A stretch of DNA of 64,000 nt from Macrostomum lignano (GCA_002269645.1 NIVC01002149.1:1-64000), one strand, 5' to 3'; positions 24,398 to 48,109 are shown, numbered from the stretch's first letter. Translations and numbers: made by a program. The notes: a model not told the origin generated them from the sequence alone.

Positions 24398-27300
24398 TCA
24401 AGAGATCCTGCGCACGTATCTCGCCATGTACAGGTAGTTGAGCTGCCTGACGTGCTCAATGCAGCGCTGCTCCTCGGCGGTGATCCAGTTCTCCTCGCGC
24501 TGCCTCAGCGTCACAACAGCCAGGGGGAAGCCGACAATGGCGTAGAGAATCAGCGCGCAGCCAGCGATGAAGTAGGCCAGGTAGGCGTCATTGAACTTCT
24601 GTAGGAAGAACAGCTGCTTGGAGATTGACAGCTTGAACTCGTTGGTCTTCCACTGGTTCCTGCTGTCCAGCACCAGGTAGCACTCCCAGGCCCCGGTGTC
24701 CGCGTAGGACAGCGCCAGGGTCCAGTTCCTCTCGTACCAGTCTGCCAGTAGGTGCTCTCGCTTTGGCAGCCCGTTCTGGTACCACCGAACCACCGCCGCC
24801 TCCATTGACGGCAGCTGGGCGTCCATGAAGGTCTCCGCGTTGGTTGCCATGACAACCGTTTGCAGCTCGGGATAACTCTTATCTGTGAGCTGCCGCGTGA
24901 GCAGGGTGAAAGTTCGCATCAGGTAGTGCTCGCCGTCCAGCACCTGCGGGTGTTGGGGGAGCACTGACACAGTACAGCCTTACAGCTGACACAGTATAGC
25001 CTTACAGCTGACACAGTACAGCCTTACAGCTGACACAGTATAGCCTTACAGCTGACACAGTACAGCCTTACAGCTGACACAGTACAGCCTTACAGCTGAC
25101 ACAGTATAGCCTTACAGCTGACACAGTACAGCCTTACAGCTGACACAGTATAGCCTTACAGTTGACACAGTATAGCCTTACAGCTGACACAGTATAGCCT
25201 TACAGCTGACACAGTACAGCCTTACAGCTGACACAGTACAGCCTTACAGCTGACACAGTATAGCCTTACAGCTGACACAGTACAGCCTTACAGCTGACAC
25301 AGTATAGCCTTACAGCTGACACAGTATAGCCTTACAGCTGACACAGTACAGCCTTACAGCTGACACAGTACAGCCTTACAGCTGATACGTTACTGTCTAA
25401 CAACTGAAAGACACGCTGCTATCTAGCATGTGACGCATTGCTCCCAGCTGTGCATCCACTGACGCTGGCTCAATGAGGCAGACCAAACCGGCGGCTCACC
25501 ATGTAGCAGGCGTACAGCCCGACCTTATCCGCATCCACCGGGTCGATGGTCAGCTGGGTGCCGAAGCTCCGCACCTGCGCCATCTCCAGCTTCGTGTGCC
25601 GGCTGACGGCTTTGCTGGCCTCGTCTGAGCCGGTCAGCAGCCCCTTGGCCTCCTCCGACTGCGCCATGAACCACTGCAGCCGGGTCTGCAGGGCGATCAC
25701 GCTCACGTTGTTCCGGCGCCAGTTGATCTGCAGGTGCTGGTAGGGCTTCACGCTGCTCAGTGCCAGGCTGTAGGCTTCGTTAGCGCAGTCCAGCGTAGCC
25801 GGGGCGCCGTAGTTCACGTAGAACAGCTGGTTGGGCGTCTCCGTCAGGTCCTGCGCCAGCATCTCCTTGGCCATGGCCAGGAAGTCGGTGTCAGCCGAGC
25901 AGGGCACCTCGCAGTCCTCCTTCTGTAGGCGGCCGTGGCTGCCGCCGCCGCAGCGGAGGCCTTTGGAGTCCGGCGGTGGTCTGTCGCAGCGGCGAACTCT
26001 GGTGCGGCTGCCCTGCGGAACGGCGTTGGTTGTTTAGAAACAAAGCATTTTGTGATCTGAAATGATTGCGTTTCTTGGCAATTAATTCTCGAAATTTGTG
26101 TACATCCACTCACACAGGATGTACAGCTCTCACACAGGATTAAGTAGAGCTCTCACACAGGATTAAGTAGAGCTCTCACACAGGATTAAGTAGAGCTCTC
26201 ACACAGGATTAAGTAGAGCTCTCACACAGGATTAAGTAGAGCTCTCACACAGGATGTAGAGCTGTGTACAGTACTCACACAGGATGTACAGCTCTCACAC
26301 AGGATTAAGTAGAGCTCTCACACAGGATTAAGTAGAGCTCTCACACAGGATGTAGAGCTGTGTACAGTACTCACACTGGATTTACAGCTCTCACACAGGA
26401 TTAAGTAGAGCTCTCACACAGGATTAAGTAGAGCTCTCACACAGGATGTAGAGCTGTGTACAGTACTCACACTGGATTTACAGCTCTCACGCAGGATTAA
26501 GTAGAGCTCTCACACAGGATTAAGTAGAGCTCTCACACAGGATTAAGTAGAGCTCTCACACAGGATGTAGAGCTGTGTACAGTACTCACACTGGATTTAC
26601 AGCTCTCACACAGGATTAAGTAGAGCTCTCACACAGGATTAAGTAGAGCTCTCACACAGGATGTAGAGCTGTGTACAGTACTCACACTGGATTTACAGCT
26701 CTCACACAGGATTAAGTAGAGCTCTCACACAGGATTAAGTAGAGCTCTCACACAGGATGTAGAGCTGTGTACAGTACTCACACTGGATTTACAGCTCTCA
26801 CGCAGGATTAAGTAGAGCTCTCACACAGGATTAAGTAGAGCTCTCACACAGGATGTAGAGCTGTGTACAGTACTCACACTGGATTTACAGCTCTCACACA
26901 GGATTAAGTAGAGCTCTCACACAGGATTAAGTAGAGCTCTCACACAGGATTAAGTAGAGCTCTCACACAGGATGTCGAGCTGTGTACAGTACTCACACAG
27001 GATTTACAGTCTCACACAGGATGTACAGCTGTCACACGGGATGTATAGCTCTCACACTGGATGTACAGCTCTCACACAGGATGTACAGCTCTCACACTGG
27101 ATGTACAGCTCTCACGCAGGATGTACAGCTCTCACACAGGATGTACAGCTCTCACACTGGATGTACAGCTCTCACACAGGATATACAGCTCTCACACAGG
27201 ATGTACAGCTCTCACACAGGATGTACAGCTGTCACACAGGATGTAAAGCTCTCACACAGGATGTACAGCTCTCACACTGGATGTACAGCTCTCACACAGG

Positions 27301-27946
27301 ATGTACAGCTCTCACACAGGATGTGAAGCTCTCACAGGATGTACAGCTCTCGTACGAGAAACCACTTGATTCAGCTCCAGTTTTCCTCCCCAGAACTCTA
27401 ACTCCAGGGCACGACAGCCGCACCTTGCCGCAGTCCTCTTCCAGCTCGAGCGCGTTGCCCCTTGCCGGCATGGCCACGCCCGACTTCTGGCCGTCGATGT
27501 TGCTCTGCGCATCCGACGCCATGTCGACACGCGCCTGCTCGACCTTCGCGGCGTCGTCCGGGCCGCCGACCACGGGAGCGGCGGCGGAGTCGGCGGCTGC
27601 CTTCTCAGCCGTTTTGACGGCTTCCGCGGTGGCGTTGAACTGGCAGTCGGTCCACTCGCCCCACTCGCCCCAGCCGCCGTTCTGCGGGCAGATTACGTAG
27701 GCCCGGCAGGGCAGGCACTCCTTGCTGGCTTTCTCGCCGCCCTGGCAGAAGTCCAAGTTGATGGCGCCCAGCTTCGGGTCGTTCATGTCGACGCAGTCGC
27801 GGCGGCGGCAGCGGACGCCCTGGCCGCAGGTGGTGCTGCACTGCGTCTCGTGAGCGGACCAGGACTGCCAGGCTGGGCTGATGCCGGCGCGGACCGGCGG
27901 GACCGGCAGCCACACGACGGCGAGGAGGGCAAGGGCGAGGGCGCCG
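24398..27946 (-). CDS. Type I membrane protein: hydrophobic N-segment, 2x thrombospondin type-1, 2x Ig-like, TM, short tail (start exon not located)
   Basis: Exons 27424-27946, 25500-26012, 24398-24943 join in frame. TSP1 motifs WQSWS..CSTTCGQGVRCRRRDC and GGWGEWGEWTDC..GSRTRVRRC; Ig motifs ATLDC..WRRNN..LTIDPVDADKVGLYAC and VRWYQNG..ADTGAWEC; TM AYLAYFIAGCALILYAIVGFPLAVVTL. Confidence 0.85.
24963..25385. repeat. 22-bp minisatellite, ~19 copies (intron)
   Basis: Unit CTGACACAGTACAGCCTTACAG. Confidence 0.95.
26108..27350. repeat. 20/23-bp minisatellite with ~96-119-bp higher-order repeat (intron)
   Basis: CTCTCACACAGGATTAAGTAGAG and CTCTCACACAGGATGTACAG monomers; a CTGTGTACAGTA marker recurs at roughly 96/119-bp spacing. 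Confidence 0.92.
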
Positions 27947-27984
27947 CTGAAAAATTTGACAGCCTTCGCGGCATTTCAATGTTC

Positions 27985-28200
27985 GACTGGGATGGGAGGG
28001 TGGGATTGGGAGACTGGGATGGGAGACTGTGATGGGAGACTCGGATGGGAGACTGGGATGGGAGACTGTGATGGGAGACTCGGATGGGAGACTGGGATGG
28101 GAGACTGTGATGGGAGACTCGGATGGGAGACTCGGATGGGAGACTCGGATGGGAGACTCGGATGGGAGACTGGGATGGGAGACTGGGGATGGGATTCTGG
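27985..28200. repeat. 13-bp G-rich minisatellite
   Basis: GGGAGACT(G/C)(G/T)GAT units. Confidence 0.88.
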
Positions 28201-28785
28201 GGAGATGGGGAGTTGGGAGACGAGAGACAATGAGATCGGAGATTGGGGAGGGAAGGTCAATAATCAGTGTGCATGCAGCTACACCTGCTTTCAAAGTGAT
28301 GGATTTGAAATCAATGAATCGCACACAGCGACCCCAACCTGCTCTGGAGTGGTCGGCGATCCAGCCTGCTGAATTCAGTCAGTTCGAGTACTTAGACAGA
28401 CGAGAGGCAGATAAATATTTAAAAAGTTCAAAATTTTTCTCTGACCTCTGAATTTGTTTTACTTAACTGCATCCGAAGAAAGATTGAGCAGTGGTGGGAC
28501 CTTCTGCCATAGACAATCCAACCCATCTACTCGTATACTTGACTTGTTATTTATGAACTTTATCATGATACAGATATTGGCCCCAAGAAAGTTGACTTGT
28601 CCTTTATACTACTATTATGAGTACATAGTAACGTTAACAGACGCATATTAAAAATTTAAATTTAACTCAGTCAAATTCAGATCTGTAGTTAAAAATCAGC
28701 GAGTTAAAACAGCATGTGGAGCCGGGCCATTGCACTGTTCAGTGTGTGTCGAGGAATCGCGAAAGTCGGTCACACAAATTACGAA

Positions 28786-31700
28786 TTAAAAATTCTCCTT
28801 GTTGAAGTAGAACACAGAGCTCGTGCTGTTGCTGAACTCATTGCACCTGCCGTTCAAATCCTTAGCCAGCTGACCCGGTCCGCAGAAGAATATCCCTATA
28901 GACGTGCTGGAAGCGAAAAATATAAATTTGAAAATCAAACAATGAAAATGTTGAACAGCCTACTTTTGAAGTAGGCGAATAGCGTATTACTCGTATTATG
29001 CTGACAAGTAACGAATTATACTCTACTGTTGGTGAAAATGCTAGACAGTCTACTGCTTTAAGTAGGCAAGCAGTGAATTTTATTGCCTAAAGAGTCCATG
29101 ATAAAAACCAAAGCAGCGCTCACTCCGGATGCTTGGCCGCCAGGCCCCGCAGCTCCAGGTCCCAGTTCGGCCGCCCGTAGTGCGTCCGGGTCCGCAGCCC
29201 CGTCAGACAGTCAGCCTCGTCGCCCTCCCGACTGGCGATCTCGCGGGCTTGGCGAGTCTCCACGCTGCCCGTAAGGTGCACCCGGATGTCTAGCAGCTGG
29301 GCGTAGTCATCGCCATCCATTCGCTGAAGGTCGCGCTCGAGATCCTGCAGCAAGGCGGCGAACCACTCGAACGCACGGCAGTCGGGGCAGATCCAGTAGA
29401 AGTAGAGGCGCTTCAGCTTGCGCAGGGAGCGCGTCTTGCCGGCCTGGTGCCACACATCGCGCAGCACGGAGGCGAAGGGGGTGACGCCGATGCCGCAGCC
29501 AATCAGCACCGAGACCGAGTACTGGGTTACGCCCTGCGGAGGGAAGAGGAGACGGAATTTTCCTGCCCGGATAAAAAAGTGCAGAGTTAGCCGACCAATA
29601 AGGAATCAAAGGGACGGCTTGATGAGGTAGGCGGAATATCTGGGAGGCTTGAGGGATGATTTAAACCAATGGGGAGGCTTCAGAGGGTAGGCGGACCAAT
29701 GGGGATGAGGCTTCAGAGGGTAGGCGGACCAATGGGGATGAGGCTGCAGAGGGTAGGCGGACCAATGGGGATGAGGCTGCAGAGGGTAGGCGGACCAATG
29801 GGGATGAGGCTGCAGAGGGTAGGCGGACGAATGTTTTCGGAGGGTTGAGGTGGTTGAGAGGACCAATTATATGGAAATGCTTTCTGCAGAAATTCGTACC
29901 AGGAAGGAGGGACTTCGACATAAAGGCACAGCAATGCTATGTAGCTACTTAGAGAACTCACATCAGACGCCGTGCCGTACGGTCCATCCAAGTAGATTCT
30001 GAAATAATTCAAGGAATAAGGTGAGACTTGGAAAATAATAAATGACAGGAATGCACTACTTGGCGACACAGACAGCGTTGAAGATGGTTCGAATTTTCAA
30101 CGGTGCCTTCGGATTTCTATGGCAAAATCTGATTTACTTTGCATTCCTTATAAATACAAACCGTTCTTTGGGCTTAATACGCTCGTATCGTGAACAATTC
30201 TAAGAAAGTGACTCACCTCGGCAGCAGGTCCCGCTCGCCTGTGGTGAGGTCGCCTTTGCCGTAGCACTGTGAGTACAGCTGCTCCACTTGCTTGGTCCAG
30301 TCGCCCACGGTGCGAATGTGGACGGAGATGTACGGATCGTCTGGGGCCTGCGATGGTTGAAGATTCCCCAGTTACCTCTCAATGAATGCACCGGCTACAC
30401 TCTGAAGTTCAGGTAAATCTGCTTTCTAGCTTGCTTAACAACTACAGTGAGTTCATGCTTTTCAGTCATTTACTGTCTAAGGTACAGTGTACAGTGCAGG
30501 GTGTACAGTGCAGGTTGTACAGTACAAGGTGTACAATGCAGGGTGTACAGTGCAGATTGTACAGTGTAGGTTGTACAGTGCAGGTTGTACAGTACAAGGT
30601 GTACAATGCAGGGTGTACAGTGCAGATTGTACAGTGCAGATTGTACAGTGCAGATTGTACAGAGTAGGTTGTACAGTACACGGTGTACAATGCAAGGTGT
30701 ACAGTGCAGGTTGTACAGTGCAGATTGTACAGTACAAGGTGTAAAATGCAGGGTGTACAGTGCAGATTGTACAGTGCAGATTGTACAGTGCAGGTTGTAC
30801 AGTGTAGGTTGTACAGTACAAGGTGTAAAATGCAGGGTGTACAGTGCAGGGTGTACAGTCAAAGGTGCACTGTGCACCTGTTAGAGGTGCAAACAGTACA
30901 TGGCTTAATGTACAGGCTGTACAGTATAGGCTGCACTCTAAAACAAAGTACTGTTTTTGAATGATTGAGTTGTACTGCCTTTTTACAAGGACCACTAGAA
31001 GTTACCGTTGTATCAGGACGCAACACTCGTAAATATTGCAAAATTATTTGAAGGCCCGCTTGTTTGCATTGCAGCTGAACTTTAAATGCTCATAACTCCG
31101 GACTGGTTGCACTTAAAAAGATATTTTTTTTGCCAGGTTGCTCAAAATTTTGTTTTCTTTAACATGATGCAAAGTTTGGCGCTATCTACATGTAGGAGCG
31201 GCGGGCGTACAGTAAAGTAACGGCAATACACAATATTTCATTGCATACAAAATGAATAAAGTTTCACGTAAACAAGCGGGCCTTCAAATAATTTTGCAAT
31301 ATTTACGAGTGTTGCGTCCTGATACAACGGTAACTTCTAGTGGTCCTTGCCTTTTTATTGTGTAGGATGTACTTTCAGGGTGTACAAACTTTTTCACAAA
31401 TGTTCACTAATACGAGCAAGAAGAATACACTACTGAAATTGGCAGTAATAAAATTTTAATCACGTACTAGAAAATCGCATGTAAATGGAAAAACTTGAGT
31501 ATCAGCAGAGAGCGCACCGAGGTGAGGGTGAACGGGTGCCACTGCAGCTGGGAGGCCTCCGGCACCAGCAGGAAGACGTACTCGCCTGGCGAGGCGGCGA
31601 ACCCGGGGCAACGAAGGCGCAGCTCCATCACTCGGGAGGGATGCTGGACAGCGCGGACCACCTCCACTCGGCGACAACGGCGAGACACTCGGAGCAGCTT

Positions 31701-34125
31701 CTCGATGGCGTAGATGGCAGCCGGAGCCACCAGCCACATCCACGTCTGGCGAGGCAGTGGGATGGGAATAGGGAGGCTGGGTGTTCACCCTTCATCATGT
31801 TTAGCCTACACGGCAGCTCGGACTCAAGTCAATCTAATATTGGGGTATCGTCTCTCCGATAATAGAATCTCTAGTCTCCAATGATAGAATCTCTAGTCTC
31901 CGATCCCAGAATCTCTAGTCTCCAATCCCAGAATCTCTAGTCTCCAATCCCAGAATCTCTAGTCTCTAATCGCTGAATCTCTAGTCTCCAATCGCTGAAT
32001 CTCTAGTCTCCAATCGCTGAATCTCTAGTCTCCAATCCTAGAATCTCTAGTCTCCAATCCCAGAATCTCTAGTCTCCAATCCCAGAATCTCTAGTCTCCA
32101 ATCGCAGAATCTCTAGTCTCCAATCGCAGAATCTCTAGTCTCAAATCCCAGAATCTCTAGTCTCCAATCCTAGAATCTCTAGTCTCCGATCGCTGAATCT
32201 CTAGTCTCCAATCCCAGAATCTCTAGTCTCCAATCCCAGAATCTCTAGTCTCCAATCCCAGAATCTCTAGTCTCCAATCTCAGAATCTCTTGTCTCAGTC
32301 GCAGAATCTCTAGTCTCAGTCGCAGAATCTCTAGTCTCAGTCGCAGAATCTCTAGTCTCAGTCGCAGAATCCCGGATCTCAGCCCCAAAGCAATGGCAGA
32401 ACCAACCGTGGAGCCGGCAAAGCTGAAGGTGGGCACCGGACACTCCGGCAGGGAGCCGCTGCCCCACAGCTGGAATTTGCTGGCGCAGGCGGCCGGCTTG
32501 TGGGCGGCCAGGTTGGACTGGGGACGGACAACGCCTCTGCGGGTTCGGGGTGGAGGTGAAGACATTTGGCACAGCGGAGACTCACAGCAGCTGAGAAAGG
32601 AAGGCCGTGATGGAGACGATTAAGGATGAAGAGAGCAGGATAATTGGAAAGGGGGAGGGAGCAGATGAGGACAAGGGTGTGAAGGGGAGAGGCATTGAGG
32701 GGAGATGAAGGTGGGGTAGAAAAAAGGACTGAGAGGAATGAAAAGGAAATGAAGGGATGCGGCGATGGGAGTAAAAAGGAAGGGAGGGAAACGAAGTGAG
32801 GGAAACGAAGGGAGGGAAACGAAGGGAGGGAAACGAAGGGAGGGAACCGTGGAGAGGGAAACGAAGGGAGTGAAAAAGAGGGGAGGGAAACGAAGGGAGG
32901 GAAACGAAGGGAGGGAAATGAGGGGAGGGAAACGAAGGGAGGGAAACAAAGGGAGGGAAATGAGGGGAGGGAAACGAAGGGAGGGAAACGAAGGGAGGGA
33001 AATGAGGGGAGGGAAACGAAGGGAGGGAAACAAAGGGAGGGAAATGAGGGGAGGGAAACGAAGGGAGGGAAACGAAGGGAGGGAAACGAAGGGAGGGAAA
33101 CGAAGGGAGGGAAATGAGGGGAGGGAAACGAAGGGAGGGAAACGAAGGGAGGGAAACGAAGGGAGGGAAACGAAGGGAGGGAAACGAAGGGAGGGAAACG
33201 AAGGGGGAGCGAAGGAAGATAAAGTAAAGGGATGGAAGGGAAGATTCAGGAGACAAAGGAAGGGGAGATGCAGGGAGACAAAGGAAGGGGAGATGCAGGG
33301 AGACAATGGAAGGGAGATGCAGGGAGACAAGGGAAGGGAGATGCAGGGAGACAAGGGAAGGGAGATGCAGGGAGATAAGGGAAGGGAGATAAAGAAATCC
33401 GAGTGCAAGTCCAGCAAGCCAACGAGTCCTCGAGTCCCCCGAAGCGACTCACGCCATCCCGTGCACCAGCAGCAGCAGGTAGAACAAGAAGAAGAGCTTG
33501 TGCGTGTACCAGAAGGTCTCGAACCTGGCCCGCTTGACCGCGGTAGCCGCCGACGCCACGATGGCCACCAGCAGGCAGAGCAGCAGCAGGCCGGTCCAGC
33601 CGGGCAGCAGGACGGCCGCCTCCACCAGCGGGTCGGCGCCGGCCCGCTGCACCGGGTTGATTCCCCGGTGGCCGGGCAGCAGGGACAGAGTCCGCAGCAG
33701 GCTGCCGCCCGCGCTCGAGTTGCCGCCGGCGGGCAGGTCGAAGGCGTGGACGAACCGCTCGATGTTGAGGTAGTGGGAGGCGGCGTGCAAAGCGGCGTGA
33801 AAGCAGATGAGCCAGGCCAGCGCGCGGTGGAGGCTGATGTTGTCATCGATGAGGCGGCGGACGTTGCGCTTGCACAGCTGGCGCGGCACGGGTGAGGGGC
33901 GCAGCGGGGGATTTTGCGGGGCCTCAAAAACTGTATGAACTGCTGCTGCTCTCGATTTACTCACTCACTCACTCACGCACTCACTCTCACTCACTCAGTC
34001 AGTCACTCACTCACTCACTCACTCACTCACTCACTCACTCACTCACTCACTCACTCACTCACTCACTCACTCACTCACTCACTCACTCACTCACTCACTC
34101 ACTCACTCACTCACTCACTCACACA

Positions 34126-34164
<39 letters not shown>

Positions 34165-34237
34165 TCACGCACTCACTCTCACTCACTCACTCACTCACTC
34201 ACTCACTCACTCACTCACTCACTCACTCACTCACACA

Positions 34238-34274
<37 letters not shown>

Positions 34275-37200
34275 TCACGCACTCACTCTCACTCACTCAG
34301 TCAGTCACTCACTCACTCACTCACTCACTCACTCACTCACTCACTCACTCACTCACTCACTCACTCACTCACTCACTCACTCACTCACTCACTCACTCAC
34401 TCACTCACTCACTCACTCACTCACTCACTCACTCACTCACTCACTCACTCACTCACTAACTCACTCACTCACTCACTCACTCACACACAAACACACACAC
34501 ACACACACACACACTCACTCACGCACTCACTCTCACTCACTCACTCACTCACTCACTCACTCACTCACTCACTCACTCACTCACTCACTCACTCACTCAC
34601 TCACTCACTCACTCACCCACACTCACTCACTCACTCACTCACTCACTCACTCACCCACACTCATTCACTCACTCACTCACTCACCCACACTCATTCACTC
34701 ACTCACTCACTCACTCACTCACTCACTCACTCACTCACTCACTCACTCACTCACTCACTCACTCACTCACTCACTCACTCACTCACTCACTCACTCACTC
34801 ACTCACTCACTCACTCACTCACCCACACTCATTCACTCACTCACTCACTCACCCACACTCATTCACTCACTCACTCACTCACTCACTCACTCACTCACTC
34901 ACTCACTCAATCCTCGCTCACCAATCAACAGCCGCAGCAACTCACCCGCTTATTAACGCACAGGTACCGCAGGAAATGCAGCAGATTTCTGCACACCGGC
35001 AACGCAACAAGGGCGCAGTTGAAGTTTAAGCAGGCGGCCGAGGCTCTGGCGAAGGCCAGGCTGTGCTGAAGGAAAAAAACAGCAAGGAAGAAATAGCGGA
35101 ATATTGCAGCAAAAATCACGGAAAACTCCATGACTTGACTTTGGAAACTTCCCTCGCCAGCTCAAAACTAGGAAAATTCCAGTGCAAAATCTAGGAAAAT
35201 TTAATTATTAATTTAAAAAAATCCTTCGCTAAATCTAGGAAGATTCCATCGCTAAATCTAGGAAGATTCCATCGCTAAATCTAAGAAAATTCCATCGCTA
35301 AATCTAAGAAAATTCCATCGCTAAATCTAAGAAAATTCCATCGCTAAATCTAAGAAAATTCCATCGCTAAATCTAAGAAAATTCCATCGCTAAATCTAAG
35401 AAAATTCCATCACTAAATCTAGGAAAATTCCATCACTAAATCTATGAGAATTCCAATAATAAATCTAGTAAAATTCCATCGCTCAATCTAGGAAAATTCC
35501 ATTAATAAATTTAGGAAAATTCCATCACTAAATCTAGGAGAATTCCATCACTCAATCTAGGAAAATTCCATCACTAAATCTAGGAAAACTCCATCACTAA
35601 ATCTAGGAAAATTCCATCACTAAATCTAGGAAAATTCCATCACTCAATCTAGGAAAACTCCATCACTAAATCTAGTAAAATTCCATCACTAAATCTAGGA
35701 AAATTCCATCACTAAATCAAGGAAAATTCCATCACTAAATCTAGTAAAATTCCATCACTAAATCTAGGAAAATTCCATCACTAAATCTAGTAAAATTCCA
35801 TCACTAAATCTAGGAAAACTCCATCACTAAATCAAGGAAAATTCCATCAGTAAATCTAGGAAAATTCCATCGCTCAATCTAGGAGAATTCCATCGCTCAA
35901 TCTAGGAGAATTCCATCGCTCAATCTAGGAAAATTCCATCGCTCAATCTAGGAGAATTCCATCGCTCAATCTAGGAAAATTCCATCGCTCAATCTAGGAG
36001 AATTCCATCGCTCAATCTAGGAAAATTCCATCAGTAAATCTAGGAAAATTCCATCGCTCAATCTAGGAGAATTCCATCGCTCAATCTAGGAAAATTCCAT
36101 CGCTCAATCTAGGAAAATTCCATCACTAAATCTAGGAAAATTCCATCAGTAAATCTAGGAAAATTCCATCGCTAAATCTAGGAAAATTCCATCAGTAAAT
36201 CTAGGAAAATTCCATCGCTCAATCTAGGAGAATTCCATCGCTCAATCTAGGAGAATTCCATCGCTCAATCTAGGAAAATTCCATCACTAAATCTAGGAAA
36301 ATTCCATCAGTAAATCTAGGAAAATTCCATCGCTCAATCTAGGAGAATTCCATCGCTCAATCTAGGAAAATTCCATCGCTCAATCTAGGAGAATTCCATC
36401 GCTCAATCTAGGAAAATTCCATCAGTAAATCTAGGAGAATTCCATCGCTCAATCTAGGAGAATTCCATCGCTCAATCTAGGAGAATTCCATCGCTCAATC
36501 TAGGAAAATTCCATCGCTCAATCTAGGAGAATTCCATCGCTCAATCTAGGAAAATTCCATCGCTCAATCTAGGAGAATTCCATCGCTCAATCTAGGAAAA
36601 TTCCATCAGTAAATCTAGGAAAATTCCATCGCTCAATCTAGGAAATTCCATCGCTCAATCTAGGAAAATTCCATCGCTCAATCTAGGAAAATTCCATCAC
36701 TAAATCTAGGAAAATTCCATCAGTAAATCTAGGAAAATTCCATCGCTCAATCTAGGAAAATTCCATCGCTAAATCTAGGAAAATTCCATCGCTCAATCTA
36801 GGAGAATTCCATCGCTCAATCTAGGAGAATTCCATCGCTCAATCTAGGAAAATTCCATCGCTCAATCTAGGAGAATTCCATCGCTCAATCTAGGAAATTC
36901 CATCGCTCAATCTAGGAGAATTCCATCGCTCAATCTAGGAAAATTCCATCGCTCAATCTAGGAGAATTCCATCGCTCAATCTAGGAAAATTCCATCGCTC
37001 AATCTAGGAGAATTCCATCGCTCAATCTAGGAAAATTCCATCGTCAAATCTAGGAAAATTCCATCGCTCAATCTAGGAGAATTCCATCGCTCAATCTAGG
37101 AGAATTCCATCGCTAAATCTAGGAAATTCCATCGCTCAATCTAGGAAATTCCATCGCTCAATCTAGGAGAATTCCATCGCTCAATCTAGGAGAATTCCAT

Positions 37201-38327
37201 CGCTCAATCTAGGAGAATTCCATCGCTCAATCTAGGAAAATTCCATCGCTCAATCTAGGAGAATTCCATCGCTCAATCTAGGAAAATTCCATCGCTCAAT
37301 CTAGGAGAATTCCATCGCTCAATCTAGGAGAATTCCATCGCTCAATCTAGGAAAATTCCATCGCTCAATCGAAAAATTCCATTCGCTCAATCTAGGAAAA
37401 TTCATTACGAAATTTGAGAACTTTAATTAGTGAGCTGCAACGAACTAAGCCCATAAGCCAATAAAACTCACCCCCAGCATCAGTCTATGGTAATAGACGG
37501 CGTCAGATTGCTCGTAATGTGACAGCGTGACAGCAAAGATGATCACATTTACCAGTAGTAAAATAATCTGTTAACAAATTGTCGTGTATTAAAAAAATTC
37601 GGAATTAAACAGATGCGTGTAGATGATATAAATTAATGGTAACTTAAAGGCTTGAGCCAATTTAAAGATGCTTTGAGTTCTAAGATCTCCGCATGTAGTT
37701 TGGGTACCGATTCATAAATTTTTACGAGCGTACATATAATAGATTGGGCCATAGACACTAGTGGCAAGCTGGGTCATAAACAACAATGACACATTGGGCC
37801 ATAGAAACTAATGACACATTCGGCCATAGACACTAGTGACACATTGGGTCATGGACACTAGTGAAACATTGGGCCATAGACACTAGTGACACATTGGGTC
37901 ATGGACACTAGTGACAGATTGGGTCATAGTGACAGATTGGGTCATAGTGACAGATTGGGTCATAGTGACAGATTGGGTCATAGTGACAGATTGGGTCATA
38001 GTGACAGATTGGGTCATAGTGACAGATTGGGTCATAGTGACAAATTGGGTCATAGTGACAGATTTGGTCAGATACTAGAGCCATAGACCGATTGGGTCAT
38101 AGTGACAAATTGGGTCATAGTGACAGATTTGGTCAGACACTAGAGCCATAGACTAAGTCAGAGACACTAGAGAGTGATTAGGTCAGAGACACCTTGATAT
38201 GCAATAGAAATTTTAATTCTGAAAAGCTTACGCAGACAGACAGGATCAGGGCCAATCAGCTCACCAGCACAAGGGTCCTCGGTCCCTCATTGTGACACCA
38301 ACGGATGGCGCCGAATTTGGTTACCAT
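28786..38327 (-). CDS. NADPH oxidase, gp91phox (NOX1/2/3-like) type, 586 aa, no EF-hands
   Basis: Exons 38265-38327, 37472-37567, 34946-35065, 33453-33877, 32407-32536, 31518-31745, 30217-30347, 29962-29998, 29124-29533, 28786-28906 total 1761 nt in frame. [23 protein letters not shown], four heme His (SLH..ALH; YTH..VHG), [42 protein letters not shown], terminal KENF*. Confidence 0.96.
29625..29830. repeat. 33-bp minisatellite, NOX intron 8
   Basis: Unit GAGGGTAGGCGGACCAATGGGGATGAGGCTGCA. Confidence 0.88.
30478..30930. repeat. TGTACAGTGCA-based short-unit repeat, NOX intron 6
   Basis: Recurrent TGTACAGTGCAG(G/A)TT units of ~14-16 bp. Confidence 0.88.
30986..31349. mobile_element. MITE, 364 bp, 80-bp perfect TIR, 8-bp TSD, CAAGG termini (P-superfamily-like)
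   Basis: 30986-31065 is the exact reverse complement of 31270-31349; TSD CCTTTTTA at 30978-30985 and 31350-31357. Confidence 0.93.
31862..32372. repeat. 21/22-bp minisatellite, NOX intron 5
   Basis: GAATCTCTAGTCTCCAATCCCA and GAATCTCTAGTCTCAGTCGCA units. Confidence 0.93.
32775..33390. repeat. Polypurine repeat, NOX intron 4 (pyrimidine-rich on the sense strand)
   Basis: GAAGGGAGGGAAAC units, then GGGAGATGCAGGGAGACAAGGGAA units. Confidence 0.92.
33958..34910. repeat. (CTCA)n/(CA)n compound microsatellite, NOX intron 3
   Basis: About 200 CTCA units with repeated (CA)n and ACGCACTCACTCTC interruptions. Confidence 0.97.
35220..37400. repeat. 23-bp satellite, ~95 copies, NOX intron 2
   Basis: Unit AATCTAGGA(A/G)AATTCCATC(G/A)CT(C/A). 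Confidence 0.96.
37745..38165. repeat. 18-bp minisatellite with degenerate flanks, NOX intron 1
   Basis: GATTGGGTCATAGTGACA units. Confidence 0.88.
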
Positions 38328-38957
38328 GGCGACGCAATTAAGTGTCTAAGTGGTCTGTCTCGGAAGCAGGAAAAATTAACGAACGAGAAAGAAATCATAT
38401 GGGAATCAGGCATTTGTTAATTATATCAAGCTGATTAAAAACTCACGACCAAGACAATAAAGAATTTTTTTGCTTCGACAGCAGTGAGCAGTTGAAACGT
38501 TAGTTTAAAATTTATAAAATTTCACGTGTATTTCGCACTAAAATAATCCACCACTAAGAAATGATTACATGATAAGCATGGTTTGATGAAATGTAATGAA
38601 ACCAACAGCCTCTTTAACAATAACGAAAATACTGAACAGTTAAGCTTGAACTACAGAAATTACATAAAAATATTGGCATGTTAAGAAAGAATGGCATTGT
38701 AGTTTGTTTTGTTAGCATAATAATTTGTGTACCTGCGTGCTTAGGATTAGGAAAGACAATGTTAGCAGAAGTTGAAATTAGACATTCAAAACGCACTAAA
38801 TGGCTTATATTGTAGGAGATTAAAAAATTAACAATAGGCACAGAGGAGATTCGCACATCACTATCAGCTGCATGAAAGGCTCGGCCCCTGCCGCAATTCA
38901 AGGCCAAAGTCGACCCGCGGCCAATTTAAAAAAAGTTTTGTAAATATTTTTTTATAA

Positions 38958-39545
38958 AGATTTCCCGGACCCTAGATTTCCCAGACCCTAGATTTCCCGG
39001 ACCCTAGATTTCCCAGACACTAGATTTCCCAGACCCTAGATTTCCCAGACCCTAGATTTCCCAGACCCTAGATTTCCCAGACCCTAGATTTCCCAGACCC
39101 TAGATTTCCAAGACCCTAGATTTCCAAGACCCTAGATTTCCAAGACCCTAGATTTCCTAGACCCTAGATTTCCCGGACCTGAGATTTCCCGGACCCGAGA
39201 TTTCTTGGACCCGAGATTTCCCAGACTCTAGATTTCCCAGACCCTAGATTTCCTAGACCCTAGATTTCCCGGACCTGAGATTTCCCGGACCCGAGATTTC
39301 CCAGACTCTAGATTTCCTAGACCCTAGATTTCCCGGACCTGAGATTTCCCGGACCCGAGATTTCTTGGACCCGAGATTTCCCAGACTCTAGATTTCCCAG
39401 ACCCTAGATTTCCTAGACCCTAGATTTCCCGGACCTGAGATTTCCCGGACCCGAGATTTCCCAGACTCTAGATTTCCCAGACCCTAGATTTCCCAGACCC
39501 TAGATTTCCTAGACCCTAGATTTCCTAGACCCTAGATTTCCAGGA
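38958..39545. repeat. 16-bp minisatellite, ~36 copies, between PEF and NOX
   Basis: Unit ACCCTAGATTTCCCAG. Confidence 0.94.
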
Positions 39546-39668
39546 CCATAGAGGACCTTAAAACTACTCAAGCATAGGCTTTGTGAGTAAAGTTAATGCT
39601 AGCACCCCTGACTAATGGAACTGCCTTAAATGTAGAAGTGCTGCGTCGCAATGACCTGTTATCCCCGG

Positions 39669-40734
39669 TTAATCGCCGACAACTCGCTGAGTGAGGAACT
39701 CCTCCAAAGATGCAGGGCAGGCAGCGCCGCCGCGTTCGGCGACCTCCTGCAGCAGCCAGAACTGCTCGGCGTGCCGGTGAATCAGCGAGTTCAACAAGAC
39801 GAAGCCGTCCAGGTCGAGCAGCTGCGTCTCGGCGGCGCAGAATTTGTGCATCGCCCGGTGCAAAAAGTTGGCGGACAGCAGGCAGTCCGGGTGGATTTGC
39901 AGCACGGCGCTTCGCAGCTGGCGGCAGTCAATGTGCCCGGAGCCATCATCGTCGGTTTCTAGGAAAACGTGGATCCAGTGACGCACGCGACCGCAGATTT
40001 CCTGATTAGGGTGGGGGCAGGGAATTTCGGGAAATTCGCGGCTTTTACTACTGACAAGGTTAGGAAGTAGTGTTTACAGAAAATTAATTCGTACTGAGTA
40101 ACTAAAACACTGCATGTAGAACCACATGCAGAATGGCCACTCAAAGTCTTTCCAATACAAAGAAAAGAAATATGTGGAAAGACACTTTCTAAGCATATTG
40201 AGCGCCTATTATTAATACAATCTGTCCGTTTTGGCCATAGACAAAAACCCAGAACAGACGCCCAAATGCAAATAGTATTAAGTGTTTAACAATGTAGCTT
40301 TTCTAGGCTAGCGATCCTTATCTGAAGGGTACCGCTACCAATTTGGAACTGAGGGTTGGCGCTACTATGCGGATCTGGGGGGGGGTTGGCGCCATTATGC
40401 GGATCTGAAGGGGTGGCGCCACTATGCGGATCTGAGGGGTGGCACCATTATGCCTTATACCAATTATAAATAGGCTTCATCAAACCTCCGAAGCCCTCAC
40501 TTTGAACTCCTCAAAGCCAACGGAGTCGCTGCCACCCGAAGAGAAGTGCTGAACCAACGTCTGGCATGTGCCAATAGAAAACTGCTGACAGCTGTCCGTC
40601 AGCAGCACCTGCTGCAGTTCAGGGGCGGAAATTCTGCCATTCGAGTTGCTGTCGGCAATTCGAAACCACTCAGTCACATCAGTGCCGTCTGTGGCATCAG
40701 TTGGAGCTGGGCACTCAGTCAGGGTCTGCAGCAT
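39669..40734 (-). CDS. Divergent penta-EF-hand protein (PDCD6/peflin/sorcin family), 188 aa
   Basis: Exons 40501-40734 and 39669-40001. EWFRIADSNSNGRISAPELQQVLL..QFSIGTCQTLV..VGFEEFK|EICGRVRHWIHVFLETDDDGSGHID..LS.NFL..KF..LDLDGFV..SLEEFL follows the PEF layout. Confidence 0.85.
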
Positions 40735-41876
40735 CTCATTTGTTTCTTTTTCCGCCTCCTCATAGTCCGGCTTGTTGGCATTAAATAAAAACGACTGAAA
40801 TAATTTTCTGTCTTGTGACTTTTCAAGAGCTAAAATTGTAGCCTTTCTAATCTCCTAATCTTTATAAACTTTAATTTTAAACTTATATAATTTTTAGCTA
40901 AAAAAGTTTAAAGTATAAAAAGAGCTTGCAAAGCTATACAAATTAATTTTTTGCTCATCAATCCATATAAACTAGACAAGACACAGATACTTTTCATTGT
41001 ATAAAATTTCGTTTTAAGTTTATTCAATAAAAAGCTTAATTTAGTTCAAGCTGTTTAGCTTTGTAATTGCTTTCTGAAAGTGTCCATTGACACTTGATTC
41101 TTATAGAATGTTCAATAGTTAAAAGAGAAGTAAAGTTATATTTTGAAATTTGCATAAAATATAGAGCTTAAAATATTTTAACACTTGCTTTGTGACCTGG
41201 ATCTGAAAATCCGAAAATCCAAAAACTGAACATTGTACTTATTCTATTGTATAACATCTGCACACAATAAATTAATATGGTATACAATTAACCGTCATGC
41301 AAATGTAACTGTGCTGGACAACCTTAATGAATAAGAAAGCAATAAATTATATGGATGGATCCAACAAACACGAGAATGTCAAAAAATGCAATGAAAAATA
41401 GCGGAAAAGTCTATAGCTTCTTAGAAAAAGTTGAACTTAAAATTTTAAAACGCTTGAGCAGTAAATAAAACAAAACGAAATTAAATAAATGCGAAAATCT
41501 TTGTAAAAGCTTTTTAGCTTAACAATTCTTAAATTTTCTTAACGTAAACACAATACAAATTTTTTTTTCATATTTCCATATTCTGCAAACTTTACAAAGC
41601 GTTGACATGGTTTCGTTCTTAACTAGGTATAACAAATCCGATTTAAAGTTTTTGCAAATTTAATTATAAAAAATTTCTGTGTTTTTTAAATTATATATAA
41701 GTTTAGTTTCGTTTGAAACTATTAACACATTTAACACAGATTAAAAATGTCTCTATGGTGATGAAAATCTTTTAAAGTAAAGAATCTGCACATTTTCTGA
41801 CTCTCAACTGGCGGGCGTTTAACTAGTAAAAGTAATTTTTTCTTTGATTTTTTGTTTTCTTGGATCTCATTAGAAA

Positions 41877-44800
41877 ATGTCGGACGGATCAGAAGAGGAG
41901 GAAGAACAGGGCATGAACCTGGGCGTAAGTGATTTTACTGTTCTATTTAGTCCGATTTGTATAAGAATGACTATATATGGACCTCAGAATTCCTGTACAC
42001 TACTCGTACTATGTTATATGTTATCGTTAGTAGCTAAAAATCATTTTGGTATCATAAACAGCATTGAAGTGCTTGAATGCAAAAAAATGAATTTTATGGA
42101 ATATACAAACTATCCAATAGAATATAAACTGTTGAGCTTACTAGAGTTCTGTTTTATGAAACTATAAACAAACTAAAATTATTATGCCATTTCGTATATA
42201 ACCTTGCGGTTAATTTTTTAGGAGTACGAAGGCGAGAGGAACGAACGCGATGAGAGGCACGGCCACGGTAAGGCGACCCTGCCAAATGGGGACACGTATG
42301 TCGGAGAGTACGAGAATGGCAAGCGGCATGGATCTGGACTATACCGGCAAGTGGATTCTTACCCTAATTTTATAGCCCCGGTGCATTTTCACCATATTAA
42401 CAACCGTTGGATATTAATTTAGGTTCAAGAACGGCGCCCGCTACGAAGGTCAGTACCAGAAGAACAAGAAGCATGGCAAAGGTGTGTTCATCTACCCTGA
42501 CGGATCCAGATACGAAGGTGAGCCATTTTAAATGCCCTGCCTAAATTTGATTTACTGCGAGCTTTCACGCATTGCATGGGAATTCATCGATCCACTTTTA
42601 GGCAGCTGGATCGAGGACCAGCGATCCGGCACTGGCAAGTACATGTACGTCAATGGCGATTATTACGAGGGCGAGTGGCACCAGCACCAGCGGCACGGCC
42701 GGGGCACGTACTTCTTCAGCGAGACCGGCTCCAAGTACGTCGGCATGTGGAAGGAGGGCAAGATGGACGGTTACGGAGAGCTGGTACACGCCAACCACAA
42801 ATACGTGGGCCTGTGGCGCAAGGGCTACGTGAGTGCTCGATGGGCGGCCTGGGGAATGTAGATTTCAGTGGCTTCTTCAGGTACCGCTCCCACCGGTACT
42901 TCAGGTATCTCTCTCCCCCACCGGTGCTTCAGGTGCCTCTCTCCCCCACCGGTGCTTCAGGTGCCTCTCTCCCCCATCGGTGCTTCAGGTGCCTCTCTCC
43001 CCCACCGGTACTTCAGGTGCCTCTCTCCCCCACCGGTGCTTCAGGTGCCTCTCCCCCCACCGGTACTTCAGGTCTCTCCCCCCACCGGTACTTCAGGTGC
43101 CTCTCCCCCACCGGTACTTCAGGTGCCTCTCCCCCCACCGGTACTTCAGGTGTCTCTCCCCCACCGGTACTTCAGGTACCTCTCCCCACCGGTACTTCAG
43201 GTCTCTCCCCCCACCGGTACTTCAGGTGTCTCTCCCCCACCGGTACTTCAGGTGCCTCTCCCCCACCGGTACTTCAGGTCTCTCCCCCCATCGGTACTTC
43301 AGGTGCCTCTCCCCCACCGGTACTTCAGATGCCTCTCCCCCCACCGGTACTTCAGGTGCCTCTCCCCCCACCGGTACTTCAGGTATCTCTCCCCCCACCG
43401 GTACTTCAGGTGCCTCCCCCCACCGGTACTTCAGGTACCTCTCCCCCCACTGGTACTTCAGGAGCCTCTCCCACCCACCGTTACTTCGGGTGCCTCTCCC
43501 TCCACCGGTGCTTCAGGTGCCTCTCCCAAATCATCGCACAGACATGGTAGAAACTGAATGCCTTCAAAGCTGCAAAAAACCTCATTCCAGATGGACGGCA
43601 AGGGCAAGTACGTGTTTGATGTGGGCTGCCAGCAGCACGGAGAATACCAAGCTGTTGAACAGGTGCGCATATTGAGTTTCATTTTCCTGGTCCCCTGTTT
43701 CGGGGAGCGCATGATACTCAGCAGTTTGAACTCCCAGTGAATCTTAATCAGAAGACTGTTCAAAACTGCCATTCCCCAAAAAAGCAGATAGGCATGAAGC
43801 CAGATTCAGCTAGCGGAGTCCGCAAGGTACTTTTAAACTGCCAATTCATCACTTTTTCAAGTTTTTAGTTTTTTATACTCATGCTTTTTCACTTCTAGAT
43901 TTGCTCAAGATATTTGTTTCTTATGGTTTTGAACTTTTGGTTTTCTGATGCATCTTGAATTTGGGATAAAACTGTAAAATTGACGCATTCTAACTAAGAT
44001 ACTCAATGTACTTTTAACTGTATGCTTTTTGCACTTCTATGTGCGCCGAGTCTTTCAGCTGTCACAAATTTTTTCGATTAGAGAATGTAACTTCATTGCA
44101 CTTTTAAAGCTGGCTTAGAAATCTGAAGTTCGCAATGTACTTTTAAACAGGCCGCCGACGACAAAGGTGAAGAGGAGGAGGAGGCGGCCATCATCGTGCC
44201 CAAGTGGAAGGCCGGCGCCATCACGAAGATCACCGAGGACGCGCCGCCGCCCATGACCTCGGCTGACCCCACCGGAGCGATGGAGCAGCCGGACGCTGAG
44301 GCGGCGGGAGACGAGGAGGGAGACGGTGAGCTGCGACTTTGAGCTCTTTGATTGCCTGAGTTTCCTGAGTCTGAGACTGACGGTGCGAATCTGGGATAGG
44401 AAGCGATAATTCGTTGTACAGGCTGCTTGTACAGTGCATTCAACATGTACAGGCTGCTTGTACAGTGCATTCAACATGTACAGGCTGCTTGTACAGTGCA
44501 TTCAACATGTACAGGCTACTTGTACAGTGCATTCAACATGTACAGGCTGCTTGTACAGTGCATTCAACATGTACAGGCTACTTGTACAGTGCATTCAACA
44601 TGTACAGTCTACTTGTACAGTGCATTTAACATGTACAGGCTGCTTGTACAGTGCATTCAACATGTACAGGCTGCTTGTACAGTGCATTCAACATGTACAG
44701 GCTGCTTGTACAGTGCATTCAACATGTACAGGCTGCTTGTACAGTGCATTCAACATGTACAGGCTACTTGTACAGTACATTCAACATGTACAGGCTGCTT

Positions 44801-46404
44801 GTACAGTGCATTCAACATGTACAGGCTACTTGTACAGTGCATTCAACATGTACAGTCTACTTGTACAGTGCATTCAACATGTACAGGCTACTTGTACAGT
44901 GCATTCAACATGTACAGGCTGCTTGTACAGTGCATTCAACATGTACAGGCTACTTGTACAGTACATTCAACATGTACAGGCTACTTGTACAGTGCATTCA
45001 GACTACATGTAGAGGTTTTTGCTGGTATATTAAGCTAAATTGACTTTTAGTTGTCTCTGACGTGCTTTCACATGCTTGTATCGGCGCATATCGCTGGGAT
45101 CTCTTGACCCTAACTCTTAAAAGTACTTATGCAGTCTGTAAAAGTAACAGTTTTGGTTTTATTCATAACAAAAAATCGCGTTTTTCCTCCCCTTCTGCCC
45201 ATTGAAAACTCAGAGGTTCCGAGTTCGAACAGCCGGCACTGATTGAGCGGTTTGGGATTCCCACCAGAGCCCCAATGATTTTGTGCATGATTTTTTATTG
45301 ACCGAAAAACTTTTTTTAATTTTCCTCCCAAATTTTGCACTGCATTGATTTCCAAGCTACTATGAGTAGTAGATGCCCCAAATGTACAGACTGAACTCGC
45401 TAATCTGTGTCGGCTTGTTATCGGGCCTCCCACACGCACAGCAGAGGCTGATCAGGCAGAGTAAGTGCTCATTTACTTGTGTAGTCACCCAGCATGCTTC
45501 CTTGCTTATTACTAAGGTAAATGTGCCTTAGCATCTGTTTTCTCTGATGGTAGCGGTGGGCAGTTGACTCTACTTTGCAATCGTCGTTATATAAAACTAT
45601 TTTCGCACTAAATGTACTGCTCGCCAACCGGTTGCATTGATTATTTAAAAAGTACTTACTGACCGAATATCTGCTGCAAGAACTGTCCCACTTATTACTG
45701 TATTTCCGGCACAAACCTTTAAGAAATGCAGACCATTTAAAACGGACACGATGTACTTTTCTGATTTCTGCTTGAACATTTCTAATGTGTTAAACTTTTC
45801 AAAACACCCCTTACTACCTATCGTAAGGCCTTGGCGAAAAAAGGAATCTTAAACTTTTAATTTGAAAGCCAGGCCTCCAACACAACCTCATCCCGACTTG
45901 AAAATTGAAAATTGCCTGGTTCTTAAGATATGCTTATGAGCTCAAGCAGCTATAAGCACTGCGTACTTTTACTGAACTCTTCCACTTTCTCAACTCCCGC
46001 CCTCCGCACAATCCTCGAAACACAACAAAAATTAAAAGCGCACAACTTTACCTTTTTTACTCTACTGATACTGATACTGATACTATACTCTACTGCCCGG
46101 ACGGCAGTAGTCAAATGCGAATATTCAAAATAAAATTTACTTGAGCTGTTAAAAATTTCCAAATTTTTTCTCTACTGCAGAAGAGAAGCCACTTGACGAC
46201 GACGAAGCCGCGACGGCAGCCGCTCCCGCCGCCAACGACGGCGACGCGGACGCCGACGCCGCCGAGGTCGCCGACGCCCCCGACGCCGATGCCGACGCTC
46301 CCGCAGGCGACGACGCCGACGATTCGGCGCCGCCGCCTCCTCCAGACGAAGATGAAGGCGGCGACGCCCCCGCTGAAGATGCGGAGGACGCGGGAGGGGA
46401 CTAA
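41877..46404 (+). CDS. RSPH1: Radial spoke head 1 homolog (MORN repeats, acidic tail), 321 aa
   Basis: Exons 41877-41924, 42222-42346, 42423-42517, 42602-42828, 43591-43662, 44151-44325, 46181-46404 total 966 nt. [64 protein letters not shown]. Confidence 0.95.
42880..43525. repeat. ~26-30-bp minisatellite, RSPH1 intron 4
   Basis: CCACCGGTACTTCAGGTGCCTCTCCC with variable C-run length. Confidence 0.93.
44415..45000. repeat. 31-bp minisatellite, ~19 copies, RSPH1 intron 6
   Basis: Unit TGTACAGGCTGCTTGTACAGTGCATTCAACA. Confidence 0.95.
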
Positions 46405-47635: not shown

Positions 47636-48109
47636 TGACTGGAGGAGGGTGAGGGACAGGGTGAGGGACAGGGTGAGACAGAGACCCGGGACTGGGCTGG
47701 AGTGGCAGAGGCTGTGCTCGGTCTCTAGGCCAGATGTTTATTTAGAAGTCCATGGCTCGCATCTAGCCCTCCCATCTGCTTCACGCTAACCTTCCATGTA
47801 CGCGGGCGGGCATGCAATATTAACGAGCGGCCGAGCTGAGCCGGGCCCAACATGCAAACGTGCGCCAAGTGGGTTGAGTGAACTGCGAGATGCGCTTGGC
47901 ACTGATCTGAGTCGAGGTCATCGTGACGAGAATTTCAGACAGATATTTCCTGCAGCAGGCGGGCGCATCAATGATGAGCGGGTCAGGTTTCTCGAGATCC
48001 CGTCTGAAATACAGAGAGAGGAGTTTATGTGCGGGACAAGTTTGCTGGTAACCACTTGGACTAGCTGGAATATTTCTAATTTTTTAGAGCATGCACGCTG
48101 GGAGACAGG

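Follow-up and report, generated by a model that had tools for sequence, protein, structure and literature searches.

Macrostomum lignano is a free-living regenerating flatworm with hidden polyploidy that uses spliced-leader (SL) trans-splicing. On its contig NIVC01002149.1 a penta-EF-hand (PEF) gene lies directly upstream of, and on the same strand as, a NOX2-type NADPH oxidase (NOX) gene, which is followed in turn by a gene for a TSP1/Ig-like membrane protein. An earlier interpretation made from the sequence alone (the sequence-only reading) had taken PEF and NOX for a co-transcribed module in which the PEF protein supplies EF-hands in trans to an oxidase that has none, rebuilding a NOX5-like Ca2+ switch. 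As sequence the finding is real; on co-transcription the reading is partly right, and as a functional module it has no support. It is fairly likely that PEF, NOX and TSP1/Ig are ordinary neighbours, arranged head to tail and unrelated in function, that probably lie in one SL-trans-spliced transcriptional unit. Only position ties PEF to the oxidase. All positions given here are those of the 64-kb window, that is the whole stretch of DNA analysed, and are at the same time the coordinates of the contig in assembly GCA_002269645.1 (Mlig_3_7). Two sister loci, L002 (NIVC01000022.1) and L003 (NIVC01001805.1), carry PEF, NOX and TSP1/Ig together with the MORN-repeat gene that flanks them as in the window.

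Gene order and the probable transcriptional unit

The minus strand of the window carries, in the direction of transcription, PEF, a 1341-nt spacer, NOX, an 843-nt spacer and TSP1/Ig. The features of this stretch are the following, where CDS stands for coding sequence, ORF for open reading frame and TRF for Tandem Repeats Finder.

40795-40800, minus strand: TTTCAG, candidate SL acceptor from a motif scan, 60 nt 5' of the PEF ATG and in frame with it
40501-40734, minus strand: PEF exon 1 (ATG at 40734; codons 1-78; EF1 and EF2), ORF and GTGAGG donor read directly
39669-40001, minus strand: PEF exon 2 (codons 79-188 and TAA; EF3 to EF5), acceptor ...CTAATCAG followed directly by GAA, phase 0
38328-39668, minus strand: PEF-NOX spacer, 1341 nt (1215 nt in L003, 1109 nt in L002)
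38958-39552, no strand assigned: 16-bp minisatellite in the PEF-NOX spacer, 37 copies with 89% matches, 595 nt (TRF)
38367-38372, minus strand: TTCCTG, mutated SL-acceptor consensus ending 39 nt before the NOX ATG, from the three-locus alignment, substitution at 38368
28786-38327, minus strand: NOX2-type NADPH oxidase, 586 aa, 10 exons, translated model equal to PAA60475.1 with 100% identity and coverage
NOX exons, minus strand: 38327-38265, 37567-37472, 35065-34946, 33877-33453, 32536-32407, 31745-31518, 30347-30217, 29998-29962, 29533-29124, 28906-28786
27943-28785, minus strand: NOX-TSP spacer, 843 nt (1630 nt in L003, 2685 nt in L002)
27985-28194: 13-bp repeat array in the NOX-TSP spacer (TRF)
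27947-27952, minus strand: TTTCAG, SL-acceptor consensus 5 nt before the annotated TSP1/Ig CDS start (TTGCAG in L002 and L003)
24398-27942, minus strand: gene for a TSP1/Ig-like single-pass membrane protein, 525 aa, 5'-partial, exact match to PAA60474.1, 'BOX15_Mlig031512g5, partial'
TSP1/Ig exons, minus strand: 27942-27424, 26012-25500, 24943-24398
41877-46404, plus strand: MORN-repeat (RSPH1-like, radial spoke head) gene, 321 aa, gene call in GCA_002269645.1

The layout claimed earlier stands. The two-exon PEF model confirms a stop at 39669 upstream of the NOX ATG at 38327 on the same strand, with a spacer of 1341 nt in place of the 1342 bp first given, and TSP1/Ig follows the NOX stop as closely as had been said (843 nt against a claimed 840). 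The three genes are consecutive on one strand with no opposite-strand gene between them in the window, in L002 and in L003; this shared gene order carries no weight because the duplicates are recent (synonymous divergence, dS, of 0.02-0.04, and 0.02-0.03 for NOX).

SL operons and transcriptional units have been described in M. lignano (Wudarski et al., 2017; Ustyantsev and Berezikov, 2021). Gene names in Mlig_3_7 derive from transcriptional units assembled from RNA-seq and clustered at 95% identity, each cluster receiving a common prefix; genes were then delimited within the units by cuts at SL trans-splice and poly(A) sites that had been mapped by experiment (PMC5730564). NOX (Mlig031512g4) and TSP1/Ig (Mlig031512g5) have a prefix in common, and since unrelated genes share a prefix only when a unit spans both, this supports their belonging to one transcriptional unit. 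The TSP1/Ig CDS is flagged as 5'-partial with an acceptor consensus 5 nt before it, and this acceptor is kept in all three loci, so that TSP1/Ig is predicted to receive the spliced leader there. Operons in this species, which hold about 15% of the genes, have been called where the intergenic distance is <1000 nt after adjustment for repeats, with [T/C]TNCAG as the SL-acceptor consensus (PMC8629364). Subtraction of the TRF arrays only leaves 746 nt (1341-595) between PEF and NOX and 633 nt (843-210) between NOX and TSP1/Ig, both under this limit, and neither spacer contains AATAAA or ATTAAA.

That PEF also belongs to the unit is suggested by evidence that is circumstantial but coherent. The copies of NOX are numbered g2 (L003), g4 (window) and g7 (L002), and a 60-aa gene call corresponding to PEF exon 2 stands just upstream of g2, from which numbering we infer that PEF and the two genes downstream share a unit. 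Where the window has TTCCTG, L002 and L003 have TTCCAG, at a site whose end is 39 nt upstream of the NOX start codon. Had the window unit been left uncut at this mutated acceptor, only its longer ORF, that of NOX, would have been given a CDS, and an uncut unit would explain both the numbering (g1-g3, g4-g5, g6-g7) and the absent annotation of PEF. A search of paper texts and supplements for expression or trans-splicing flags under 'Mlig031512' found nothing.

A doubtful but not negligible alternative gives PEF and NOX promoters of their own, with PEF perhaps sharing a bidirectional promoter region with the MORN gene and only NOX and TSP1/Ig forming one unit. PEF and the divergent MORN gene are indeed head to head, 1142 nt separating the latter from the PEF ATG, and the shared prefix covers NOX and TSP1/Ig only; in GenBank the interval from NOX to the MORN gene of the window is without an annotated gene. 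The raw spacer of 1341 nt is above 1000 nt unless the repeats are subtracted, and in the window copy no YTNCAG was found within 400 nt 5' of the NOX ATG. An AG acceptor had been noted shortly before this ATG; such dinucleotides are present (CAG ending at 38355, TAG ending at 38346) but lack the consensus for SL addition. Set against independent promoters are the TTCCAG before NOX in both sister loci, the lack of a poly(A) signal between PEF and NOX, and the NOX numbering with the PEF remnant called just upstream of g2. The proposal of a co-transcribed unit has indirect support for NOX and TSP1/Ig, from prefix, acceptor and spacers, and may extend to PEF.

The spacer minisatellite had been described as filling most of the PEF-NOX spacer and as being of a kind found in introns. 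The array is present, but it makes up 44% of the spacer, so that 'largely' overstated it, and because comparable arrays with a period of at least 10 (38 of them) fill 38% of the 64-kb window, intergenic DNA included, it is no sign of an intron. Large tandem tracts lie for example at 10372-14767, 33959-34921, 35160-37403 and 48104-49807. NOX intron 2 has a 2.2-kb array of a 23-mer, the window also has a 1.7-kb G-rich array of a 12-mer, and NOX intron 3 contains an (ACTC)n tract of about 1 kb which, with a period of 4, falls outside the count of 38. The extreme GC-skew bins of the window are due to the G-rich array and the (ACTC)n tract.

TSP1/Ig has TSP_1 matches above the Pfam threshold (23-24 against 21.6 bits), an Ig V-set match below threshold (17.9 against 26), a hydrophobic segment at its C-terminus and two AATAAA signals 67-71 nt past its stop. 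The MORN gene, which is RSPH1-like and is a neighbour in L002 and L003 as well, has six MORN repeats (E=3.7e-35 in a scan of the matching portion of the chimeric protein model P0274, see below). The next called gene past TSP1/Ig is a lactate/malate dehydrogenase (Ldh_1_N, Ldh_1_C; 346 aa) on the plus strand, running to about 19974 and extending beyond 18786.

The PEF gene, the oxidase and their copies

The PEF gene is an unannotated addition to the M. lignano gene set. Its exons are separated by a GT-AG intron of 499 nt, and their join restores the PEF motif F-x-EF...W...F...DxDxSG in a product of 188 aa with its TAA at 39671-39669. Exon 1 was recovered at both paralogous loci by tblastn and blastn, while the terminal 60 aa are identical to P0124, the sole annotated fragment, which is called at L003. 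In a phmmer search of the PDB the Leishmania ALG-2 homologue came first (3.5e-17) followed by calpain, ALG-2, grancalcin and sorcin, with calmodulin behind at about 1e-6; the alignment with the calpain small subunit covers residues 50-180. Twenty-five homologues can be aligned with PEF from EF1 to EF5, the whole domain of about 170 residues. With these homologues AlphaFold2 predicts a structure of eight helices and five EF-hands (pLDDT 89.5, pTM 0.85), with long helices at H74-94 and H142-167, whose top Foldseek matches are all PEF structures (ALG-2, calpain PEF, grancalcin, sorcin; probability 1.0, TM 0.6-0.77). All hydrophobic core positions that are invariant in the homologues are kept (F24, F52, F64, F77, W87, F91, F145, F159).

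The Ca2+-binding loops are less well preserved. Loop alignment bears out the earlier observations that EF1 looks canonical and that EF3 has Q at position 12: EF1 (DSNSNGRISAPE, residues 28-39) follows D-x-N-x-N-G-x-I-x-x-x-E, and EF3 (DDDGSGHIDCRQ, residues 95-106) has Q at a position occupied by E in at least 90% of the 25 PEF homologues aligned. EF2 (SSGGSDSVGFEE, residues 65-76) has S instead of Asp at position 1 and D instead of Gly at position 6. With EF4 and EF5 also non-canonical, as they are in many PEF proteins, EF1 is the single canonical loop of the five. The N-terminus preceding EF1 consists of 19 residues (MLQTLTECPAPTDATDGTD), and the Gly/Pro-rich hydrophobic extension is missing from the current model; there may be an upstream exon or an SL-supplied start. 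The M. lignano SL terminates in ATG (PMC8629364), and an in-frame open stretch (SFLFNANKPDYEEAEKETNE) extends from the PEF ATG up to the TTTCAG at 40795-40800, an acceptor that the spliced leader could use.

In a collection of 15 billion proteins no full-length copy of this particular PEF protein was found, a word-index homology search returning no matches. An exhaustive HMMER search of 1.84 billion representatives matched the identical 60-aa P0124 and then the M. lignano peflin P0125 at 36% identity, and no orthologue outside M. lignano was found in these collections, which hold no other Macrostomum genomes. P0125 has canonical EF1 to EF3 and a Gly/Pro-rich N-terminal tail, and another M. lignano contig carries a tandem array of peflin-type genes with canonical EF1 to EF3. 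On contig NIVC01001013.1 (L017, 6275-16890) three EF-hand/peflin-type genes follow one another on the same strand, and the UniProt model P0279 ('Calmodulin', 578 aa) joins three PEF domains. The PEF family is thus expanded in M. lignano and, because its nearest relative is a peflin of the same species at only 36% identity with a peflin array elsewhere, the window PEF is judged from its sequence to be a divergent, lineage-specific peflin paralogue. If still made from the window copy, the protein would most likely be a weak single-site Ca2+ sensor of the ALG-2/peflin kind. Proteins of this kind are dimeric adaptors that bind Pro-rich targets.

NOX is a known and ordinary gene, annotated and already published, since its L003 copy (PAA63898) appears in a NOX phylogeny as 'NOX1234_Macrostomum' where, as a long-branch member, it forms an isolated 'NOX1234' clade with a Helobdella sequence (PMC9421330). 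The gene runs from the ATG at 38327 to a stop at 28788-28786, its product PAA60475.1 being named BOX15_Mlig031512g4. The protein can be aligned over its full length with human NOX2 (E=1.4e-145), and with DUOX1 (2e-57) and NOX5 (5e-50) over the dehydrogenase domain only. Its N-terminus begins at the equivalent of NOX2 residue 3, its heme histidines H110/H124 and H219/H232 are spaced as human H101/H115 and H209/H222, and it has the HPFT FAD motif, a further motif of 13 residues and a C-terminal FNKENF. Pfam assigns Ferric_reduct, FAD_binding_8 and NAD_binding_6 only, with no EF-hand or peroxidase domain in the 586 aa, in agreement with the earlier description of an EF-hand-less enzyme. Its closest relatives are annotated as 'NOX2-like / cytochrome b-245 heavy chain-like' in nemerteans, annelids, molluscs, hemichordates and vertebrates (40-46% identity), and the best 120 matches included no flatworm NOX2-type protein closer than these. 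NOX contains no ALG-2-binding motif (PPYP...YP or PxPGF), and tblastn with the human query found no p22phox-like ORF in the window. The NOX5-clade protein of M. lignano, PAA54571 (PAA54571_1_NOX5_Macrostomum), has a deposited model that opens directly with transmembrane segment 1 and lacks an EF-hand domain at its N-terminus (PMC9421330 supplement).

Several candidates that might have altered this picture were set aside. PEF exons do not serve as the 5' exons of a NOX5-like fusion, as PEF closes at a family-normal C-terminus with TAA, NOX has a NOX2-type N-terminus and the annotated protein has 586 aa; on paper a weak GTTGTC donor could be joined in frame to the TAG acceptor at 38346, but such a splice has no support. 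The UniProt model A0A1I8HE14 (P0274, UniRef100_A0A1I8HE14, 860 aa, 'UBA domain-containing protein') is no evidence for a fusion, being a chimera from an older assembly that combines the MORN gene with PEF exon 2, exons of NOX and antisense ORFs. P0123 had been taken for part of the NOX cluster but is a metagenome peptide of 40 aa with no relation to it.

The fates of PEF and NOX at the sister loci differ. NOX is intact at all three loci with dN/dS of 0.08-0.19. In L003 the PEF CDS differs from that of the window at two sites and both are nonsense changes, CAG to TAG at codon 3 (Q3*) and TGG to TAG at codon 23 (W23*), at window positions 40728 and 40667 against 7718 and 7779 of L003; the chance that a random change in this CDS creates a stop is 0.032, so that two of two is odd and is unexplained. 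In L002 the PEF ATG has become ATA, with five synonymous and three missense changes besides. The fairest reading of these sequences is that PEF would have been functional until recently and may now be redundant or dispensable in a polyploid background. The copy of TSP1/Ig exon 1 in L002 (21397-21914) has a 1-nt deletion that shifts the frame, from real decay or a PacBio indel error, and there is no TSP gene call at L002 nor at the apparently intact L003 copy. The duplicates also show a reciprocal pattern: the two loci with a damaged PEF (L002, L003) keep TTCCAG before NOX, and the window, the sole copy with an intact PEF ORF, has TTCCTG.

Weighing a functional link between PEF and NOX

In the ordinary neighbourhood that we favour, the first gene would encode a protein that keeps the PEF fold and one canonical Ca2+ loop and that is dispensable enough to be knocked out in sister copies. 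The second would encode an oxidase which, judged by its family, works most likely with p22phox and cytosolic organiser, activator and Rac partners and not by direct Ca2+ sensing, and the third a membrane protein whose transcript would gain its spliced leader at the consensus acceptor. Functional coupling between PEF and NOX would on this account be absent. With 15% of genes in operons linkage alone says little, and the loss of PEF at loci where NOX is under selection argues against an obligate partnership. The adjacency of PEF and NOX is one post-hoc case, from which a more-than-chance neighbourhood cannot be judged.

Several points weigh against this account. If PEF and NOX are truly in one unit they would be co-expressed, as Ca2+ control in trans needs. 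The window PEF ORF is intact with a confidently predicted fold, and some Ca2+ sensing through the canonical EF1 is possible. Compared with L002 the window PEF has five synonymous and four non-synonymous differences (omega 0.24; binomial P=0.039), and compared with L003 its CDS has 2 differences in 567 sites where the flanks have 39 in 2901 (P about 0.02-0.05). Lastly, the L003 nonsense codons, like the L002 TSP deletion, are read from a PacBio-based assembly only.

These same signs of selection bear on the possibility, which we think rather improbable, that PEF is dead or dying in all its copies, its exons being transcribed only within the outron or 5' part of the unit that holds NOX, and the window frame surviving because the duplication is recent. 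Such decay would account for the disabling-type changes in two of three copies, for the lack of an annotated CDS in the window and in L002 with a 60-aa remnant only in L003, and for the missing full-length protein; the degenerate EF loops and the failure to find an orthologue are also in keeping with it. A decaying gene fits poorly with the excess of synonymous change over neutrality, with a CDS less diverged than its flanks, and with a retained hydrophobic core and a confident modelled fold. The missing window annotation can moreover be explained by the mutated SL acceptor, the unit being left uncut and the CDS going to the longer NOX ORF.

Far less likely still is that co-transcribed PEF binds the membrane or the dehydrogenase domain at high Ca2+ and switches the oxidase in the manner of NOX5 or DUOX, for example in the production of reactive oxygen species (ROS) at wounds. 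The two genes are on one strand with a repeat-adjusted spacer of 746 nt, a single transcriptional unit for both is plausible, the PEF CDS has signs of past purifying selection, EF1 is canonical within a confidently predicted PEF fold, and a precedent exists in S100A8/A9, a separate EF-hand partner reported to promote NOX2 activation (PMC3393751). The evidence to the contrary is broader. PEF has one canonical loop of five and an E-to-Q change at position 12 of EF3. Its copy in L003 is disabled and that in L002 is without its ATG, although the linked NOX copies are intact and under purifying selection. NOX has no ALG-2-type binding motif, operon partners need not share function, and no title or abstract was found that links PEF proteins to NOX regulation. 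No PEF orthologue was found outside M. lignano, and the synteny that a conserved module would lead one to expect is not seen: no PEF neighbour occurs within 10 kb of the NOX2-like genes of the nemertean Tubulanus and the annelids Ridgeia and Owenia. The proposed supply of EF-hands in trans is thus left without support by the degenerate loops, the sister-locus lesions and the lack of PEF synteny.

An EF-hand gene does lie 4.3 kb downstream of the NOX2-like gene of Tubulanus polymorphus, on the same strand (OZ123226.1; L014 18496-21147). Its product of 724 aa is long and of low complexity, carries its EF-hands at the C-terminus and shows no similarity to PEF, and it was rejected as a PEF neighbour, its proximity probably being a coincidence. 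Upstream of the NOX2-like gene in both Tubulanus (L014 4907-7205) and Owenia (L016 1-1361) is a DHDDS-like prenyltransferase gene, and this linkage is possibly a conserved spiralian microsynteny that is absent from M. lignano.

The least probable proposal, marginally below the last, combines a polycistronic PEF-NOX-TSP transcript with a PEF that senses Ca2+ through EF1, is recruited to the membrane and tunes NOX in trans, the sister loci partitioning functions after genome duplication; on it, the window would have kept PEF intact and lost the NOX acceptor, and L003 would have had PEF killed and kept the acceptor.

Were Ca2+ control in trans true, it would be the first link between PEF proteins and NOX. 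It would also mean that one lineage, that of a regeneration model, had re-invented Ca2+-gated ROS production non-covalently, out of separate genes. On the ordinary neighbourhood that we favour, the locus documents a likely three-gene transcriptional unit and adds a divergent PEF paralogue to the M. lignano genes, operon-type units being already known in this species and PEF being a divergent member of a known family. It also illustrates the unequal decay of recent duplicates in a hidden polyploid, and cautions that gene adjacency is a poor guide to function in a genome rich in operons and minisatellites.

Comparison with known systems

PEF resembles the proteins of its family (ALG-2/PDCD6, peflin, sorcin, grancalcin and calpain domains IV and VI) in its alignment over about 170 residues, its predicted eight-helix five-EF-hand structure, its hydrophobic core and its canonical EF1. 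It differs in having no Gly/Pro-rich tail, in S1 and D6 of EF2, in the Q that replaces the bidentate E12 of EF3, and in being disabled at sister loci. The oxidase is like NOX2/gp91phox in its end-to-end alignment, its four heme histidines, its FAD motif and its lack of an EF-hand, and differs as a long-branch member of the isolated 'NOX1234' clade (PMC9421330).

The likeness to NOX5, DUOX and plant RBOH is one of idea only, that of an EF-hand module combined with a NOX catalytic core. In those enzymes calmodulin-like EF-hands with functional loops are covalently fused N-terminal of the membrane domain, whereas here a separate PEF-family gene has one canonical loop and its own TAA, and the oxidase is far closer to NOX2. 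S100 proteins form a vertebrate family with two EF-hands and no relation to PEF, and their genes are not linked to CYBB. S100A8/A9 offers a likeness in the concept of a separate small EF-hand protein as a trans partner for NOX2 (PMC3393751).

The comparison with the SL operons of M. lignano has one difference, the mutated acceptor before NOX in the window copy. In other respects the locus resembles them, with neighbours on the same strand, repeat-adjusted spacers of <1000 nt, a YTNCAG acceptor before TSP1/Ig and the prefix common to NOX and TSP1/Ig.

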